From NCBI GenBank assembly GCA_021613535.1, contig CP075497.1, forward strand, positions 9,362,001-9,426,000: a stretch of DNA of 64,000 bases, written 5' to 3'. The DNA is from Adineta vaga (taxonomy: Eukaryota > Animalia > Rotifera). The notes under the pieces are model-generated. The model did not search any database and was not told the DNA's origin. It saw only the letters and a program-made list of their open reading frames with translations. The position numbers were made by a program, and so were the translations under genes. Positions 1 through 15,494 of this stretch are shown piece after piece (position 1 is the stretch's first letter; each line of letters opens with the position of its first letter).

Positions 1-530
1 TCACGATAAGATGAACCGGCTTTATTTTCTTTAATTCAATTAATTTTCTTGTTAAGATCTTTAAGGATAGATGTATTTGAAATAAAAATTGCCTTATGTC
101 GAACTAATAGAATGAAATTAGTTTATGAGGGTATGCAGCGTGAGCGTGAAAAGTAGAAACTATCGGTATCTACTCTCAAAGATTTTCTTTTCTGATTGAA
201 CTTTTGTTGAAAATCACATGCAAAAATATCCTTTCTTAAAACGAACTCTTTTCTAAAACTCAAAAAATTACTGATGAAAAATATGTATCTTGAGTGTATA
301 CTGACACTCATAATCATACACGGCAGACGAAACTCCATCTCAACACATACATTAACGCCATCTTTCTGCATTAACTAACTATTCGCTTTAGTTGAAATCG
401 TCAGGTTTCATTCTCTTTTTCGAATAACAAAAATACAATACTATCAATAAAGCGAGTTTCTTTTCATAACAAACGAAATATATTCAATAGCTTGTATTCT
501 CAACAAACTTTTGTGGAATTTAAAGCGAAT

Positions 531-3500
531 ATGTACACATTTTCAACATTGCCGATTGAACTCGTCTATCGAATTTTGGATCATCTGTCTGATTTTACAC
601 TATTCTGTTCGATGCAAAATGTTTGCCAACGTTTTAATCAAATTCTGAACATTTATCATCGATATCAAGTAAGTTTGCCAAGTGCTTTACCTATTCTATC
701 ATCTGTTCAAGCACACATGAGCCTCGCAATATCTAACTTATTCAGTTTACTCAAAGAAAAAACAAATTTCACAATTCCGAAGCGATTTCCACGAGGCAAC
801 CCCACACAATATTGACTCATGCTATTAAAACAACCCTTCCTCTCAACTGTTCTTTTCTATCTATGCACATCGAATATATATCTCATCAAACGTGCACTCA
901 TGTGCCGCACAAGAATGAAACCGCAGCATTAAAACACCTTTCCCCTTTCAAACAAATGTCTCTATTGCAACTCTCAAACAATTCAACAACTATCTTTGAA
1001 ACCCACCCAATAAAATAAAGTGAACTGTTTTATATTGTGCCCCAACTCCATACGATCTTTCGCAAACCAAATCTAAAAATAACAATCCCAAACCGTTCGA
1101 AATAAACAAGTAACACTACCTTCAGTACATTACTTACTCTACTCATCCGACGATTTCAAAATTCACTCAGTAATAATCAGACAAGCACCGATTTATCTTT
1201 TCACTACATGAACCCAGATCGAACATTTTCAAACACCACCGCCACACCTCTTGTATAATGCTATATCAAATTGAAAAATCTTACTCTAAAGTTCCAATTG
1301 CTTTACCCACATTCTCGAAAGGAATATTCTATACATAGACACTCAGCACACTAAATCTCGAGAACAATCGAGTCGGCCATCAAGGAGCGCAACATATTGG
1401 TGATGCCTTGCGAATAAACACGGTAATACTCATTCACTCTTGTCCTAATTAAGACACCCGTGCTCTCTCTCGTCTATAGACACTCACCACACTAAATCTC
1501 AGGTACAATCAACTCGGCCATCAAGGAGCACAACATATTGGTGATGCCTTGCGAATAAACACGGTAATACTCATTCACTCTTGTCCTAATTGAGACACCC
1601 GTGCTCTCTCTCGTCTATAGACACTCACCACACTAAATCTGGAGTTCAATGAAATCGGCCATCAAGGAGCACAACATATTGGTGATTCCTTGCGAATAAA
1701 CACGGTAATATTCATTCACTCTTGTCCTAATTGACACATCCATACTCTCTTCTCATCTATAGACACTCACCACACTAAATCTCCGATACAATACAATCGG
1801 CCATCAAGGAGCACAACATATTGGTGATGCCTTGCGAATAAACACGGTAATACTCATTCGCTCCTGTCCTAATTGACACATCCATACTCTCTTCTCATCT
1901 ATAGACACTCACCGCACTAGATCTCGGGGACAATCAAATCGGCCATCAACGAGCACAACATATTGGTGATTCCTTGCGAATAAACACAGTAATATTCATT
2001 CGCTCTTGTCCTAATTCACACATCCATACTCTCTCTCCTTTATAGACACTCACCGAACTAAATCTCGGGTACAATCAAATCGGCCATCAAGGAGCACAAC
2101 ATATTGGTGATGCCTTGCGAATAAACACGGTAATACTCATTCACTCTTGTCCTAATTGAGACACCCGTGCTCTCTCTCGTCTATAGACACTCACCACACT
2201 AAATCTCGAGTTCAATGAAATCGGCCATCAAGGAGCACAACATATTGGTGATTCCTTGCGAATAAACACGGTAATACTCATTCGCTCTTGTCCTAATTGA
2301 CACACCCGTGCTCTCTCTCGTCTATAGACACTCACCACACTAAATCTCCAGCACAATCAAATCGGCCATCAAGGAGCACAACATATTGGTGATGCCTTGC
2401 GAATAAACACGGTAATATTCATTCGCTCTTGTCCTAATTGACAAATCCATACTCTCTTCTCATCTATAGACACTCACCGCACTAGATCTCGGGGACAATG
2501 AAATCGGCCATAAAGGAGCACAACATATTGGTGATGCCTTGCGAATAAACACGGTAATACTCATTCAGTCTTGTCCTAATTGACAAATCCATACTCTCTT
2601 CTCATCTATAGACACTCACCGCACTAGATCTCGAGGTCAATGTAATGGGCCATAAAGGAGCACAACATATTGGTGATGCCTTGCGAATAAACACGGTAAT
2701 ACTCATTCGCTCTTGTCCTATTTAACACAACCGTGTTCTCTCTCGTCTATAGACACTCACCGCACTAAATCTCCGGCGCAATCGAATCGGCGATCGAGGA
2801 GCACAACATATTGGTGATTCCTTGCGAATAAACACGGTAATACTCATGCGCTTTTGTCCTAATTGACACATCCATACTCTCTTCTCATCTATAGACACTC
2901 ACCGCACTAGATCTCGGGTACAATGAAATCGGCCATCAAGGAGCGCAACATATTGGTGATGCCTTGCGAATAAACACGGTAATACTCATTCACTCTTGTC
3001 CTAATTAAGACACCCGTGCTCTCTCTCGTCTATAGACACTCACCACACTAAATCTCCAGCGCAATCAAATCGGCGATCAAGGTGCACAACATATTGGTGA
3101 TTCCTTGCGAATAAACACGGTAATACTCACTCACTCTTGTCCTAATTAAGACACCCGTGCTCTCTCTCGTCTATAGACACTCACCACACTAAATCTCCAG
3201 CGCAATCAAATCGGCGATCAAGGTGCACAACATATTGGTGATGTCTTGCGAATAAACACAGTAATACTCATTCACTCTTGTCCTAATTCACACATCGATA
3301 TTCTCTCGTATATAGACACTCACCGAACTAAATCTCGGGTACAATCAAATCGGCCATCAAGGAGCACAACATATTGGTGATACCTTGCGAATAAACACCG
3401 TGATACTCATTCACTCTTGTCCTAATTGACACACCCGTGCTCTCTCTCCTCTATAGACACTCACCACACTAAATATCGGGGACAATCAAATCGGTGATCA

Positions 3501-4252
3501 AGGAGCACAACATATTGGTGATACCTTGCGAATAAACACGGTAATACTCATTCACTCTTGTCCTAATTGAGACACCCTTGTTCTCTCTCGTCTATAGACA
3601 CTCACCGAACTAAATCTCGAGTTCAATCGAATCGGCCATCAAGGAGCACAACATATTGGTGATGCCTTGCGAATAAACACGGTAATACTCATTCACTCTT
3701 GTCCTAATTGACACATCCATACTATCTCTCGTATATAGACACTCACCGAACTAAATCTCGGGGACAATGAAATCGGCCATAAAGGAGCACAACATATTGG
3801 TGATGCCTTGCGAATAAACACGGTAATACTCATTCACTCTTGTCCTAATTCACACATCGATATTCTCTCGTCTATAGACACTCACCACACTAAATCTCCA
3901 GCGCAATCAAATCGGCGATCAAGGAGCACAACATATTGGTGATGCCTTGCGAATAAACACAGTAATACTCATTCACTCTTGTCCTAATTAAGACACCCGT
4001 GCTCTCTCTCGTCTATAGACACTCACCACACTAAATCTCAGGTACAATCAACTCGGCCATCAAGGAGCACAACATATTGGTGATTCCTTGCGAATAAACA
4101 CAGTAATACTCATTCACTCTTGTCCTAATTGAGACACCCGTGCTCTCTCTCCTCTATAGACACTCACCACACTAAAGCTCGAGCTCAATCAAATCGGCGA
4201 CGAAGAAGGAGAGAATCTCCGAAATGCTTTTGGAAATAGGTTGATGTTGTAG
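531..4252 (+). CDS. F-box + 28-aa (RI/NLRC3-like) leucine-rich-repeat protein, 22 coding exons, ~636 aa if all exons are included
   Basis: Exon 1 (531-668) encodes the F-box MYTFSTLPIELVYRILDHLSDFTLFCSMQNVCQRFNQILNIYHRYQ and ends at a phase-0 GTAAGT donor. Twenty 84-nt phase-0 exons start at 1339, 1480, 1621, 1763, 1905, 2046, 2187, 2328, 2470, 2612, 2753, 2895, 3036, 3177, 3316, 3457, 3598, 3739, 3878 and 4019, consensus TLTxLxLxxNxIGxxGAQHIGDxLRINT. Terminal exon 4160-4252 reads TLTTLKLELNQIGDEEGENLRNAFGNRLML-TAG. No stop codon in any exon. Confidence 0.9.
1339..4200 (+). repeat. Tandem array of ~139-142 bp units (84 bp LRR exon + 55-58 bp intron), 20 full units plus one partial
   Basis: Recurring TATAG|ACACTCACC...CGAATAAACACG|GTAATACTCATTC is directly visible with a period of ~141 bp. 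Confidence 0.97.
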
Positions 4253-7200
4253 TTTGGACTCGAGTGACATTGTTTTTTAGTGCTCTTTTTTGGAGAATTC
4301 CTTCAGAGGAAACCGTTGTGGTGAGAAATGAATACACAGTGTGCTTCGAAGTCGTATTTATCGTACAATAACGTGTTTTGTTTTAAGCTCTTGATTTGCG
4401 ACCGTGAGAGATGTGTTTATGATCTAAGTTGTTGGTTTGTGTATGTCCGAGATAGCGAAATCCCATGTTTGAAATGCGCTTTAATTTGTCAATTGATGTT
4501 TGATGGGTATCATGTGATCTTTTGTGAAACTGTCTACTCTTAATATAATGTCTTCTGAAAATTTTCAACAGTGGAAAGGTTGTGAAGAAGAAGGACGACC
4601 GTCGATGCGTCTTATGAGTCTTTTAATGGGTCCGCTGCACTTATACCCATGGGTGATCTATTAGGAACGACTGGGAAATTATTTCTTAAACATTCTCTTG
4701 TGCATGAAAACGTAGCAAAATATTCTTCCGAACTTTATTTTGAATATTTCTCATAATAGAGAGGTTAGTTTAAAGTCCGAGTGTCTCACAAATCGTTACT
4801 ATATTTGTAACGCTATAGAGTTGGGTTTGAGGTCAAGAGAAAGTAGATGACGAGTTTGACAACTTTATTTAGCTGCTTCTTTGATTTGACGTTTGATGTT
4901 TAATAATAGAAAGATGTTTTGTATTCGTACATCTTTCAAGATAAAAAGAAAGTTTTAGAGAAAAGAGTGTATCTCAGTCTCAACTAACTAATGTGTAGAG
5001 ACACAATTTAGGATATAAATCGCATCTGGATGCAACTTCCGATATATTCGAGCTTGAATGAAAGACGGCGAAATGCATTTGTAAACACGAAGAGTGTTTC
5101 ATGTTTACATAGTGACCCGTACTTATAGTCCCTTCCTATTCATTATCATTCTGAGAATTACAAGAATATGATTAACTCGCGAGTGGTAAAGTGGTTCGGT
5201 CTTGAGTTTACACATATTTCTTTTTGAATATATTCATCGTCGGTGTCAATGAAACCGACTATACTAGATCTATCGAAGTTTTTCATGCTGTGCATTCAAA
5301 TAATTACACATGATAATGAACATTTAGTTGTTGAATGTACATCCATAATAGTTTCTTTATCTAATATGACGATTTTGTTTATTTGAGAAATCAATGTGAA
5401 CTGCCTTTCTAAATTCATCGATTGTGATGGACATTCTTCTAAAATATACCACCGACGCATGTATCATGACATTTGTTTCATTGAACCAATGGCATATTGA
5501 TCACTGACTTTTTGACTATGAATATATTGATGAAGTATATAATTGTCATATTTACACTGAATGGAAATTTTCTTTCATATAATCTTGATATTTTAACAAA
5601 GATAGGATTATATCTGACATGAATTAACAAATAATATCTAACATTAGTCGAAAAGAGATAACAAAATTAATGATAAACTTTGCTTGGTTTGATTTAATCA
5701 ATTTGGATTGCAATGCTCTAAATATATTTGTAAAAAATATCGAATTCGTATAATAGTTACCTATAACCTTTGAACAATTTCACAGCATCCAAACAATGAG
5801 AATTCAAACGAGTGTTGCATCATAACCAAGATAAAAATGAAGACATTATCAAACGTCATTCAAAGACGAGCTTGTAAATTTTAAAATAATCGATTGTAAA
5901 CGGATATTATCCGTTGTCATAATTAGGTAAATAACTATTGAATCCATACAAAAAATTCAATAAACTCTTTTTCTTTATTTTTTAATACTTGATGTTTCCA
6001 GATAAAAGCTTTCTCTTCTATCAGAAAACATATACATTTTGACCAAAGTTATAGAGTATATGATTGTTCGTTGTTTTTTCAATGTTTAAAATTCTAATGA
6101 AAACAAATAATAATGTTGATGTCTTGCGTAGAAGAAGTTTTTCTTTTCTACTCTCATGGCAAAAGAGATAAAAAAAACTTCCATATTTAGACTTACGAAA
6201 TGAGAACAAAATTAAAAATGAACATTCCGTAAATCTCATCTATATTTCTACTCATTTTGTTTCTTATTTATAGACAAGCAGTAATTTATTAGAGCAACTC
6301 TATTTTCATTTAATTATCATAAGTGTTCTAATCTTTTTTGATCATTGTCTTTGAAGGTAATATTTGTTTAAAGCATCATGTGATATATCCTTCTCATTAT
6401 CGTCTTTCGATAGATCCCTATTATTTTATTCTTCTATAGAATAATGTTGTCTATTCATTTGTGTAAATCTAGGTTTACAATAGAAGACCTTCTGGAATAT
6501 TCGACTGTTTTTTTTCGAAACCTATTTAATTCTCATTTGATCGTATCTTACGTTCATATTACGAGAAACTATGTTTTATTTCAGATTCTCTCAACATTAA
6601 AAATCTATTGTGGAACACTTTCATATTATTTTCCTTCGACACAATTTGAGATCAATTGCCTCTATACTTACCGAAATATACACAATACATTATGACTTTC
6701 TCATATCCCACTTACCATTTCTCTGCAATATAGATCGGTCTAAATATAAAAGAAGAAAATATTTAGTTTTCTATATAAAATATAACTCACATTTCGTTAG
6801 ACTTCGATCTGAATCTAAATGACAATAGAAAATATTTAATCTAAAATTCAAAATATCACTCAACTTTAATCAGATATGGCTATGAACCTGAATGATAACA
6901 CAATACTTAGTTTTTCATTTTAAATATAATAACATAAACATTCTCGCTAAAAGCTATGACCTTCTCAATATCTGCTGCTCTCAGGGACTGATATTTAGTT
7001 TCGAAAGCTGTCCGAATAGAAAGAGGCATTGAACAAGTCGTATTGAATATATCTCTTGATAGCTTCTGAAAGACTTGAAATCTGTGGATGAAATTCGATA
7101 TAGATTCCGATAACATTCTAAGAATCTGAGTACTGCTTAAACCAAAAACAAAAGTTGGGTGTAGCAATTAAAAGAATTTTTTTTCGCAAACTTCAATCGC

Positions 7201-8039
7201 AAAATGTTTTTGGTAAAAAATCACCATTTGGGTCACTTATCATCTTTCATAAGTTTCATGCGGGACCCATGCTTTGAAGTTAAGCTTTCGAGTATTATAG
7301 AATCCTCAGCCCGTCCCTGTCTGCTAGTCTCATTATATAAAGATATCTTCTATGCTCAAGGGTATGCAAATACCCCTACATACTATCAATTGATGACTGC
7401 GTGGTATCTCTACATAATCGAATAGAGAAACCGCTGAAAAAGATCATTTTATTTGTAAAGAATATTTTTGAAAGATTGAGCTCGATGAAATGATAAACTA
7501 TTGAATAGTTCTTTAGTTCATTTCATCAGAGTTCATGGACTTGAGCTGATCAACTCCTACCCTCTATTGTTGACATAACATATCAGTTAGTTTGAGCTAT
7601 ATTAGAGTCGTTCTCTGTTAACTTGTAACTGGCCTGAACATGCTTTTGTTACATGTAAGTAATAAGAGAAAAACCTCCCTCAGATTTGGATGACTGAAAA
7701 ATTGCTTGGAATAATCATATACTGATAGTGGGCTCTAACCATCGCCGATGCAAAACATTAAGTTGTTCAGTTCATACCTAAGATCGTTATTGACAACTTG
7801 AAATGACCAAAGCATTTCCGTTTTTTGTTATGGCAAAACTCAAAAGAGAAAAGAAAGTTGTTAAATTGTTGTTGACTTGCATGAACAAACGAACGTATAT
7901 ACATTTTTTGAGTTTATGACTATCTTCTTCAGTTGAGGAAACTTACGATACTCCAACATTCACTGGGACAGCTATATCAGGTTGCGGATTTTAGATAAGA
8001 AACTTTACATTTAGTAAAGTCGAAGGAAAAAATCTCTAT

Positions 8040-8470
8040 GATTCAATATTATCAGACCGAACCCTTTCAAACTGAGTATTTTTGGGCAGAAACCTTTTGT
8101 TTCAAAATAAATAAAACAGAACTTTTTAGGGTTTGGGATTTAATAGGCAGAACCATTTCGGTTTCTTACAAGCCTATTCATAAGCTTACATGGCTTCGGA
8201 TTGGTACACAGAACTTTTTAAAGTTCTGCAGTTGTACTAACCAACCAAATGGATTCAGTTTCGTCTCACGAAGGAGTTTTCAAGGTTCAGTAGAAAAATA
8301 ACTAAACCTTTCGTAGTTTAATGGATGACTGACAGAACTCTTCATAGTTCAGAATTGTTGCCCAGAACCTTTCTTGGTTTCTCATATGTCATACAGAACT
8401 TTTTCTGGTTCTGGAGATGTTGCAGAATCCAAAAAGGTTTTGGAACACTCCTTTTCTTCTTTCAGAGGAT
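8040..8470. repeat. Degenerate array of AGAAC(C/T)TTT / GGTT(T/C) motifs, possibly the subterminal repeats of a non-autonomous DNA transposon
   Basis: Many recurring cagaac(c/t)tt and ggtt(t/c)c words. No clear TIR or TSD identified. Confidence 0.3.
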
Positions 8471-11375
8471 AGATAGAAACAATTAATATCATTATATTTA
8501 TCAAATTTACGTATTTTTAATGTTCGACTAGTACCGATCGGATTCGAGTATCCGATTGGTCAACCTGGGTTAGAGTCTAAATAAATCTCGATTTCTGGGC
8601 ATACTTTTTGACAAATCTCAAAATAGTTTCGGGAGTGGTTGTCATTAAAATTGATTTATTTTTTTATTCGTTCAACCAGATGCGCTAAAATTTGGATCTC
8701 GAGGTTTTCAATGATGCTGAACAAAATCAAAACATAAAATCAAGAAAAGAAATTTTGACGAGTGTTTCTTCTCTTTAAAAGAGTTTTTTAAAGAATATAG
8801 ATGCGTTAATCATCATTATAGTTCTTTCAGAGAGGGGTCAGCGAATCCTACGGATGAGCGTTACTGGTTACATATCCATAAAATCTATATTTATAATTTC
8901 GTTCATCTTAATAATTTGTATGGTGAACGCGAGACGAGTTCGAATCCTGTATGAAGAGAATTTTTTTCGTTCTTTTCTGTATTTTACCATTGATAATTGT
9001 TAATTTCTTTTTTGCTTATGGTCAGAGGTATCCTCTCGAGATCTCCACGAGAACGACGTAACTTTTCATACTGATTCTGTGTATGCAAATTATTTTTACA
9101 GAAAACATCTCCTTCAATACCACTTCGGAGTGATATGATAAATGTTTAGGCAATGGAACACAAATGACAATATCATCACGTTCATTACCATATATATTGA
9201 CACTTCATCAACTAATTGTAATAACTAGGGATCCAATGTATGAACAATATTAATAAGTACTTGGGAATAGTACAAATCATCTTAATAGGATTAAGATATG
9301 GAAAAAACAAATGAAAATGATTTGTTCAACTGATGAACTTAATGCTTATTATTGTCAACGTGATGATATCGAAAGATCTAAATCATGTCAACAAAAAGTT
9401 GTAAAAATAGTTGCTCGAGAAAATAACGAAGATGATAGAACAATTTGTAAAACATACGTTTCACAATGGGAACAAGAACATGCTGTCGATAATCAGAAAC
9501 TATTCAAAGCTTTTGATCAAATTTCATTTCATTTTTTCTCTTTCTTTAATAAATAATTATTATTGCACACTAGATTATATACTTAACTTTTTTTATTCTA
9601 TTCGAATTCAATTCAATGAAAAATGAACAATCTAATGAATTATCAAATTTTTCTAACGTTTTTATTGCAATGAAATTCAAGAATAAGATCACTTGTCCAA
9701 ATATAAGCAAACAAAATTTTCAGAGACTTCGTATGTACATTTGTTCTTTAAGGATCACTAATCGATTTCTTCTTCAGGAAAAAAATATATTTTTTGTATC
9801 TATGAATCTCAAAAGATAGTTTTTCTGCTGATAATCATTCGTTCCATTCATAAACATTGGTATCACTATTCATTTGATAAGAGAATCATTTTCTCCATCG
9901 GTTGGTTCACTTGTTTGTTAATTCTGTCCAGATTATTCGTCGATACAGAGGAAGAAAAATCCAGCACTAAAAGAAAACAATCAGAGAAATGTATCACTGA
10001 CTATTCAATACCTATCTCATTTCTTACGTATATTTTCATCTGATAGAAAGAACGAAAAGAAAATCAACCGTATAAATAGTATAAATAGAGTGGCATTAGT
10101 GAACTAAGATAGTCCATGTACCAGAGGGAATAATACTTATCGATATTCGATCGTATGTATACATATATATGTTCCCTCTTGTTTTAGGTGTTCAATAACA
10201 ATGACCCTGTCCCTCCTTATATCCCGGATATAAGTAACCTTCCAAACTCCCTATGATCGTCTTCCCTCCCTTGGCATCCCGACTGGAAACTGTATGTTAT
10301 TGTTTTTGAGCTCAATTTTACAAATATTTTTTTTCATTTTCGTTTCTATTTAGGCATCATCCTCAGGTCGAAACGGTTCACTTACCGCCGTAAAGATGCC
10401 GTTTTGATCGGCCTGGATTATCATCGATGCAGATTACGGTGATACCACCACCACATAAGTGAGTTGCATACACGATTCATATAGTACGTACACCTCGATT
10501 TATTATTCTCTCTTTTTATTTTTTCTTCATGTGATATATGTATTCACTGATATCATACTCCCTTTCTTCTCTTCATAGACTAATCCTCGTATTCCTTTCT
10601 TTTGTTTACGTCACTTTTGTAATAGCCAGTTTTCTATTAATTCGAATTGGAACGTATATCATTTATTCAGTCAGTGAAGAAATAAATAATCGAAAGAGAA
10701 AAAAAGAAAACATGCCATATCAAAGGATAAAGAATGTCAGATAGAATAGAAAGAAAAGAAAAATTATCAGGTAGTCGATCATCACTACTGAAAGAATTGT
10801 TCTCTATTCTTTTATCTATCCATAAAAATGGCTCAATCGATAAATTTTATTGTGTAAAACAGAAGATTAGTTTTGAAATGTGTGAAAAGTTGTATCAGTC
10901 ATTATACAATTTGATTGACGTGAGTACTAAACGAAACGATGATTGACGAAAATAGGTAGAGTTTGGATATAACATCGGTAGTGACTTCTACTAGTGATTT
11001 TGATGTTTACTCCTCATTTTGAAGATAATATTTTTTTTCTGTTTTAGAATCCCAACAACGATCCTTTTATCGAACAACTCAACAACAACTCACCGCCATC
11101 CTCGGTCACCTACAACCACCACCCGAACAATAAAAGTCTTTTTTTGTCTTTTTCTTGATATAAAATAAAGTTTGTATAAAAATAATTATTTCTTATTTTA
11201 ATCTTTCGAAAGATACGCTTGGATAAAGAGATTTCAATTAGTTCAAGATCATTTTCACCTTCTTTCTTTGAGAAAATGAATATTTCACAAGGGGAAGATT
11301 TCTTAGGATGTGATTTGATTATAGCATAGAAAATTAATTTTTATCAAACAATATTACGAAAAATACAATGAACTA

Positions 11376-15494
<4,119 letters not shown>

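Follow-up and report, generated by a model that had tools for sequence, protein, structure and literature searches.

What does a gene encode that joins an F-box to a long run of equal-sized exons, each specifying a single leucine-rich repeat (LRR), and why do those repeats differ so strongly at a few residues? The gene lies at positions 531 to 4252 of a 64,000-nt stretch of the genome of the bdelloid rotifer Adineta vaga (GenBank assembly GCA_021613535.1, contig CP075497.1, positions 9,362,001 to 9,426,000, forward strand), which we call the window and number from its first base. An initial annotation, made from the letters alone, had read it as an F-box receptor with a hypervariable binding surface, built from one-exon-one-LRR cassettes. 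Our analysis favors, with a probability of roughly 70%, the view that the gene belongs to an inherited, fast-turnover repertoire of predicted substrate receptors of the SCF (Skp1-Cul1-F-box) ubiquitin ligase, which carry a hypervariable LRR face and have been spread by a transposon-like unit. If the encoded protein is such a receptor, the LRR surface would capture rapidly changing proteins as targets and tag them for ubiquitination, and the family would form an inherited birth-and-death repertoire of degradation receptors rather than one that diversifies somatically. Possible targets are the proteins of pathogens or mobile elements, foreign proteins and self proteins.

The body of the gene is a 141-bp tandem repeat, which Tandem Repeats Finder places at 1335-4198 in 20.3 copies. 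Exon parsing reproduced the gene model of the initial annotation, with 20 phase-0 LRR exons followed by a 21st LRR in the terminal exon. The 20 internal exons are each exactly 84 nt long (starts 1339, 1480 ... 4019), are bounded by AG and GT, are separated by introns of 55–58 nt and remain open in frame 0 throughout. As had been claimed, no unit of the array contains a stop codon, and the residues at repeat positions 8-9 and 11, given in parentheses below, are identical unit by unit to those listed earlier. The exon lengths sum to a product of 636 residues (46 from the F-box exon, 20 × 28 from the LRR exons and 30 from the C-terminal exon), in which the F-box adjoins the LRRs directly and each 84-nt phase-0 exon supplies one 28-residue LRR of the RNase inhibitor (RI) type. 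The features are as follows, with the LRR and terminal exons placed by parsing.

525..526, plus strand: AG acceptor, 5 nt upstream of the ATG, possibly for a spliced leader or for cis-splicing (contig starts, conservation in paralogues)
531..668, plus strand: exon 1, ATG and F-box, 46 codons, ending in phase 0 at a GTAAGT donor (Pfam)
669..1338, plus strand: intron 1, 670 nt, GT..AG, 10% G (RNA contig junction)
1339..1422, plus strand: LRR exon 1 (EN/R), unique in the genome, second-best match 94% identical
1480..1563, plus strand: LRR exon 2 (RY/Q), RNA joint 1421->1479
1621..1704, plus strand: LRR exon 3 (EF/E)
1763..1846, plus strand: LRR exon 4 (RY/T)
1905..1988, plus strand: LRR exon 5 (GD/Q)
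2046..2129, plus strand: LRR exon 6 (GY/Q)
2187..2270, plus strand: LRR exon 7 (EF/E)
2328..2411, plus strand: LRR exon 8 (QH/Q)
2470..2553, plus strand: LRR exon 9 (GD/E)
2612..2695, plus strand: LRR exon 10 (EV/V)
2753..2836, plus strand: LRR exon 11 (RR/R), Pfam LRR_6 at 25.6 bits, above the cut-off
2895..2978, plus strand: LRR exon 12 (GY/E)
3036..3119, plus strand: LRR exon 13 (QR/Q)
3177..3260, plus strand: LRR exon 14 (QR/Q)
3316..3399, plus strand: LRR exon 15 (GY/Q)
3457..3540, plus strand: LRR exon 16 (GD/Q)
3598..3681, plus strand: LRR exon 17 (EF/R)
3739..3822, plus strand: LRR exon 18 (GD/E)
3878..3961, plus strand: LRR exon 19 (QR/Q)
4019..4102, plus strand: LRR exon 20 (RY/Q)
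4160..4252, plus strand: terminal exon with the 21st LRR strand (EL/Q), a C-terminal cap that is kept in most paralogues, and the stop codon

The assignment of exon 1 to the F-box class was borne out by both Pfam F-box profiles, each of which it matches above the curated cut-off (PF12937, 25.5 bits with a cut-off of 24.3; PF00646, 24.9 bits with a cut-off of 20.5). All four LRR exons tested, internal and terminal, match LRR_6, and only one of them scores above the cut-off, as is to be expected when repeats are taken singly. Intron 1 is about 670 nt long, compared with about 57 nt for the other introns of the gene, and the sense strand holds 9–14% G. Its length is kept across 29 paralogues (mostly 660–690 nt, 508–1,089 nt overall), which suggests that it may reflect a function, such as regulation.

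The gene is intact, and it is transcribed and spliced in the predicted way. The RNA evidence consists of assembled contigs from four A. vaga runs over window positions 200-1780; three of these runs behave as RNA, with depths of hundreds to thousands in exons versus 4–30 in introns. In one contig, the final 15 nt of exon 1 are followed directly by 1339-1414, free of mismatches, and because the second exon of the gene is unique in the genome, we assign this junction to this gene. The initial annotation had named the lack of a spliced transcript linking the F-box exon to the LRR exons as grounds for rejecting its model, and the junction contig removes that objection. A GT..AG joint, 1421->1479, from which 57 nt are removed, is present in two runs, and loose contig ends after 668, 1422, 1563 and 1704 run on into the starts of LRR exons. 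Contigs of all three RNA-type runs start at 527, immediately after the AG that is conserved in paralogues, which fits a spliced-leader trans-splice acceptor at 525-526. A contig of run X17 continues from the donor of an F-box exon, one at least 95% like that of the window, into 105 nt of non-LRR sequence; it could represent a family member or an isoform with another second exon.

How do the units of the array differ? Among the 20 internal exons, amino acids vary at positions 4, 6, 8, 9, 11, 12, 14, 15 and 23, and once each at positions 3, 7 and 16. No two units are identical, nearest neighbors being 91–98% identical, and only 10 of 98,280 five-position sets have an entropy matching that of positions 4, 6, 8, 9 and 11. 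Codons 8-9 occur in ten distinct 6-nt states, mostly 2–4 nucleotides apart; position 9 takes seven amino acids, all encoded by NNC, and position 11 takes five, all encoded by NNA. Nearly all changes fall in codon positions 1 and 2. At the five codons, diversity in this array is 0.45 at positions 1-2 and 0.02 at third positions; it is 0.05 at framework third positions and 0.11 in the introns overall. Within the introns, diversity is 0.055 in the first 27 nt and 0.16 in the 3′ half, where three to four sequence types travel together with the 5′ part of the next exon. The earlier description of helix and introns as almost identical between units stands for the helix part, which is largely invariant, and fails for the introns, which are alike in their first 27 nt only.

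By the Nei-Gojobori method, codons 4, 6, 8, 9 and 11 of this array have proportions of nonsynonymous (pN) and synonymous (pS) differences of 0.37 and 0.05 and a ratio of nonsynonymous to synonymous rates (dN/dS) of 9.7, compared with a dN/dS of 0.11 for the framework. If the positions are instead taken a priori from the xxLxLxx pattern (3, 4, 6, 8 and 9), pN is 0.31 versus a pS of 0.04. At the five codons of this array, nonsynonymous diversity reaches about 4 times the intron value and 9–20 times the third-position value. Gene conversion alone is insufficient to account for these values, since conversion tracts cannot homogenize the third position of a codon while sparing the preceding two; selection for amino-acid change explains the contrast. 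The predicted ligand-facing codons are therefore under strong diversifying selection. Both the diversity and the entropy tests agree with the initial description of hypervariable positions that change by multi-nucleotide swaps with few synonymous differences, and the elevated dN/dS proposed there for these positions was found.

Where would these positions lie in the folded protein? For whole-protein searches and models, the database homologues P0151, P0152 and P0157 served as stand-ins, and the exons of the window were searched singly. One database homologue matches RI-like proteins, LRRC34, RNase inhibitor, NOD2 and NLRPs with E values of 1e-37 to 1e-12, those for RI-like chains being 1e-37 to 1e-27. 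AlphaFold models of P0151, from Adineta ricciae, and of P0157, an A. vaga paralogue modeled for its LRR part, consist of regular strand-helix units (six in the P0157 model); the strand occupies repeat positions 2-7 and the helix 12-24 (P0157) or 13-26 (P0151). The P0151 model resembles the LRRs of NLRX1, NLRP1, RNase inhibitor and NOD2 with a TM score of about 0.67. In LRR proteins, the x residues of LxxLxLxxN face the concave side, and in RI complexes the loop after the strand carries many of the contacts. On these models, positions 4 and 6 are predicted to lie on the concave sheet, positions 8, 9 and 11 in the loop that follows it, and positions 14-15 at the start of the helix. The nearest solved relatives are RNase inhibitor, NLRs and LRRC34, not Skp2 or FBXL proteins, and with 28-residue repeats that match LRR_6 the protein falls outside the cysteine-containing FBXL class of about 26 residues per repeat.

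The gene is one member of a large family. The initial annotation had suggested a genome-wide count of paralogous arrays, and in the assembly, which comprises 100.8 Mb in 6 contigs and yields counts that are lower bounds, we found at least 29 arrays with 2–23 intact 84-nt units, every one of them with an F-box exon. In the 28 further arrays, this exon is 87–100% identical at the protein level. A protein search with the F-box exon gave at least 140 related F-box exon matches in the genome; about 47 F-box exons are at least 85% identical, and there are at least 45 close copies, which are dispersed, mainly towards chromosome ends. The top match of the F-box search was a metagenome contig in ENA (19,950 nt) with a predicted protein of 1,246 residues (E 8e-25), which is made up of about 20 tandem copies of an F-box-like segment. 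The A. vaga genome also contains at least eight Skp1-domain matches, five of them divergent.

Comparison of the arrays indicates how the repertoire is renewed and which parts of the protein are free to change. Every array draws on a small set of cassette types of its own, which recur in blocks. Since the closest relative of 200 of the 309 units lies within the array to which they belong, arrays grow mainly by tandem duplication in place, and exon duplication, which had been put forward as one source of diversity, is indeed the dominant process. Family-wide, entropy at positions 8, 9 and 11 is 2.9, 3.1 and 2.2 bits, and most framework positions are below 0.5. For 342 exons from 29 genes, the five codons have a dN/dS of 1.9, compared with 0.32 for the framework. 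Among arrays with at least eight units, pN at the five codons exceeds the pS of other codons in 21 of 21 and the pS of the same codons in 18 of 21. The F-box is under purifying selection, with a dN/dS of 0.22–0.28 for its exon across 29 paralogues.

The public gene set conceals much of the family. The public model of a paralogue on contig C4 (UJR34376.1) is partial: it ends at the F-box exon and leaves the LRR exons unannotated. We considered whether the 182 residues that precede the F-box in this model are a true extension; they match at 0 of 29 loci and are a locus-specific or artefactual fusion. Another GenBank protein, ADD91459.1, dates from 2010 and the Sanger era and was deposited only as a "leucine rich repeat containing protein"; it corresponds to paralogue L033 and has the same cassette order as the assembly. 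We infer that it is the "leucine rich repeat protein" that a paper of 2010 describes beside a Hebe element (PMC2861651).

The design is also old. Annotated proteins of A. ricciae and Adineta steineri contain the same F-box joined directly to RI-type LRRs at a ...HRYQ|T junction. Loci of these two species and of Rotaria magnacalcarata each have the F-box exon, a long intron 1 (734 nt in A. ricciae, 753 nt in A. steineri, 545 nt in R. magnacalcarata) and 84-nt LRR exons spaced 132–142 nt apart. Because this architecture is shared, the cassette design predates the split of the two bdelloid families, rather than being a side effect of recent duplication.

Several observations weigh against a repertoire of functional receptors or temper its support. 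Part of the family is decaying or encodes shorter C termini: the terminal exons of paralogues L025, L026, L028, L033 and L045 are shortened to 10-16 residues, and one array (L027 4671-5097) has frameshifted LRR pseudo-exons. The array described here is the cleanest case of the family, its dN/dS near 10 being at the high end and the family-wide ratio about 2, and several paralogues also have high pS at the same five codons. As the synonymous estimate at the five codons is based on about three sites, it is the comparisons with introns and framework that carry the argument. The pairwise counts are not independent of one another, and recombination between units rules out clean tree-based tests. 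Finally, the RNA contigs reach only the first three exons of the gene.

How have copies of so particular a gene come to be scattered over the genome? The gene lies within a larger dispersed unit, the parts of which are as follows.

Window 1..8868, plus strand: dispersed transposon-like unit of about 10.2 kb (G000:C6:9360675-9370868), defined by homology and starting about 1,326 nt before the window
4253..8834, no strand: 3′ part of the unit, non-coding in appearance, 90–97% identical between copies
8835..8868, plus strand: 3′ terminal motif of the unit; homology between copies ends at 8868

To judge from its sequence, the unit looks mobile. Homology to more than 25 other loci begins about 1.86 kb upstream of the ATG and continues to window position 8868, where it stops abruptly, and the nine copies examined have the same last base at the 3′ end and unrelated DNA beyond it. 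The shared 5′ end opens with a short palindrome. A genome search with the 34-nt 3′ motif gave 38 matches, some of them at gene-less sites, versus 0 for a reversed control. Both termini also occur without the gene on two short elements, C3:1344046-1345487 (1.4 kb) and C3:4635989-4639820 (3.8 kb), as would be expected of non-autonomous relatives in one mobile family.

A Helitron-like transposon would be expected to have 5′-TC and 3′-CTRR ends, a hairpin close to the 3′ end, neither terminal inverted repeats nor target-site duplications, and a Rep/helicase partner with the same termini. The unit starts with T-TC and finishes with CTTG-T (CTGG-T in this copy). In neither orientation does the 3′ motif recur in the 5′ regions, and no terminal inverted or direct repeat was found; three copies, both flanks of which were compared by eye, have no target-site duplication, and a hairpin at the 3′ end is not significant (z -0.99). 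Between 4253 and 8834 there is no open reading frame longer than 87 codons, no meaningful Pfam match in ten open reading frames and no Rfam match. Nor did we find a transposase, Rep/helicase or reverse transcriptase linked to the unit, and none of 24 Helitron_like_N loci is convincingly linked to its termini. These 24 matches are clustered near contig ends, for example at C2:32-327 kb. Penelope-like elements carry hammerhead ribozymes in their pseudo-long terminal repeats (pLTRs). We considered mobilization by a Penelope pLTR and set it aside, since window positions 1-12000 and six paralogous loci gave no Rfam match (E <= 1), hammerheads included. In A. vaga, Penelope pLTRs have been described as copying intron-containing genes, with one LRR family member beside a pLTR, and LRR and other repeat families were found to exceed transposable elements in copy number and suggested to serve defense (PMC3846280). 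As in that case, an intron-containing member of an LRR multigene family has been dispersed with flanking element sequence, but no pLTR-type terminal repeats or hammerhead ribozymes were found in the 10.2-kb unit.

Could the gene then serve the unit rather than the host? The encoded adaptor might hijack the host SCF against silencing or restriction factors, or act as a selfish, toxin-antidote-like system, and the hypervariability of its face would then be the mark of an arms race with proteins of the host. Hijacking of the SCF by viral F-box proteins is known. All close copies of the gene sit in the unit of about 10 kb, with its sharp, conserved ends and no other coding capacity detected, and the same termini are found on the short elements that lack the gene. 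In addition, Caenorhabditis F-box genes are reported as selfish or incompatibility factors (PMC11573670, PMC12680543). We nevertheless consider this reading unlikely. The architecture is common to A. ricciae, A. steineri and Rotaria, no enzyme of transposition is linked to the unit, and the gene family looks older than the present unit, since the more distant members in A. vaga have no more than the gene-proximal flanks in common. Together, these proximal-only flanks and the old design favor capture and amplification of a host gene. That a transposon-like element has made a ubiquitin-ligase adaptor into mobile, self-amplifying cargo, be it as a host receptor repertoire that depends on the unit or as a weapon of the element, is conceivable, though we would not expect it.

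Identity between copies of the unit varies along its length: it is 96–97% in the distal 3′ part (window 5500-6700), 90–95% in intron 1 and the proximal flanks, and 87–93% in the arrays. The gene body has thus diverged faster than the rest of the unit.

Is it also possible that the family, a repeat-rich gene carried about by a transposon-like unit, is turning over neutrally, by the birth-and-death process termed "genomic drift", and that its variable positions are merely unconstrained and have no function in recognition? Such drift has been proposed for plant F-box genes (PMC3030570), and the truncated copies, the pseudo-exons and the spread in unit number from 2 to 23 are what it would produce. 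However, unconstrained positions should at most reach the neutral rate, and nonsynonymous diversity at the five codons exceeds it, while the third positions of the same codons are nearly invariant. As the F-box and the framework are also under purifying selection and the gene is expressed, we think drift improbable as an explanation for this family and retain the reading of a repertoire shaped by selection on its predicted binding face.

A further possibility is that each animal generates diversity itself, whether by leaving out different combinations of the 84-nt exons in splicing or through somatic rearrangement, in the manner of the lamprey VLRs, which the initial annotation had named as a functional analogue. 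The phase-0 exons could be skipped in any subset without a frameshift, and the 5′ halves of the introns are nearly identical. Yet the gene stands complete in the germline, with an open frame and canonical splicing, and nothing about it resembles somatic assembly. No donor cassettes flank the array, the sequence of the RNA contigs equals that of the germline, and the junctions in these contigs, which cannot resolve skipping, are the ordinary consecutive ones. The differences between copies are inherited in the assembly, and the clone of 2010 agrees with it. We therefore regard diversification within the animal as very improbable, and the comparison with VLRs does not extend to how they are made.

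It is scarcely credible that misassembly created the array or that the gene is a dead pseudogene: repeats of 141 bp are hard to assemble and the public model of one paralogue is truncated at the F-box exon, but no two units are identical, 20 of 20 exons have an open frame and splice sites, spliced RNA is specific to the gene, an independent paralogue sequence of 2010 has the same cassette order and 28 other arrays follow the same design.

How does a repertoire of inherited, predicted SCF receptors compare with known systems? The FBXL-type receptors (Skp2, FBXL proteins and the plant TIR1 and COI1) likewise place an N-terminal F-box before an LRR solenoid that presents substrates to Skp1-Cul1. 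They differ in having cysteine-containing repeats of about 26 residues, whereas the rotifer repeats are of the 28-residue RI/NLR type (LRR_6), and the rotifer gene has no linker or cap between F-box and LRR. The rotifer family is also lineage-specific, multi-copy and hypervariable, without orthology to any named FBXL. RNase inhibitor, NOD2, NLRP1, NLRX1 and LRRC34 are the closest solved sequences and folds and share its alpha/beta repeat; unlike NLRs, however, the rotifer gene has no NACHT or other NLR module, and its repeats are far more uniform.

F-box families have expanded under positive selection in Caenorhabditis and in plants (PMC8665587, PMC3030570), and these expansions resemble the rotifer family in being lineage-specific, with a conserved F-box and a positively selected substrate-binding part. 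They are proposed to provide innate recognition of foreign proteins. They differ from the rotifer family in having FTH/FBA, Kelch or plant-type domains and gene structures of the ordinary kind; the rotifer binding domain is an array of one-repeat-exon cassettes on a transposon-like unit.

A similar exon layout is found in the ROCO genes of the brown alga Ectocarpus, which encode one LRR per exon and are under positive selection (PMC3341825). Like the rotifer genes, ROCO and NB-ARC-TPR genes in Ectocarpus have one repeat per phase-0 exon, of 72 nt in Ectocarpus and 84 nt in the rotifer (PMC3341825; PMC11378527). Duplication and shuffling of exons, positive selection on the concave face and a proposed role as immune receptors are further points in common. 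The two differ in output, which is a ROC-COR GTPase in the alga and an F-box in the rotifer gene, where no ROC-COR was found, and in the repeat itself, a 24-residue plant-like LRR in the alga and a 28-residue RI-type LRR in the animal. Lamprey VLRs, too, consist of LRR modules with hypervariable concave faces drawn from cassettes, but they are assembled somatically from flanking cassettes, whereas the rotifer genes are inherited complete.

Each ingredient of the rotifer family is thus known separately, from the F-box expansions of nematodes and plants, the exon-shuffled LRRs of brown algae and the amplification of genes by mobile elements. Here, a single animal system unites a conserved F-box and a fast-changing binding face, one-repeat exons that can be gained or lost without a frameshift, and transposon-like dispersal. 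Its binding face changes several times faster than neutral DNA. We found no paper describing the family in the searchable literature on bdelloids or Adineta and F-box proteins.

Bdelloid rotifers have long been asexual but are exposed to fungal pathogens and mobile elements, and it is still an open question how they hold their own in the absence of sex. If the gene is a weapon of the element that carries it, its LRR face would record an arms race in an ancient asexual animal. If the targets of these predicted receptors are proteins of pathogens or mobile elements, the family would represent a new class of intracellular recognition in animals, one that feeds the proteasome directly.

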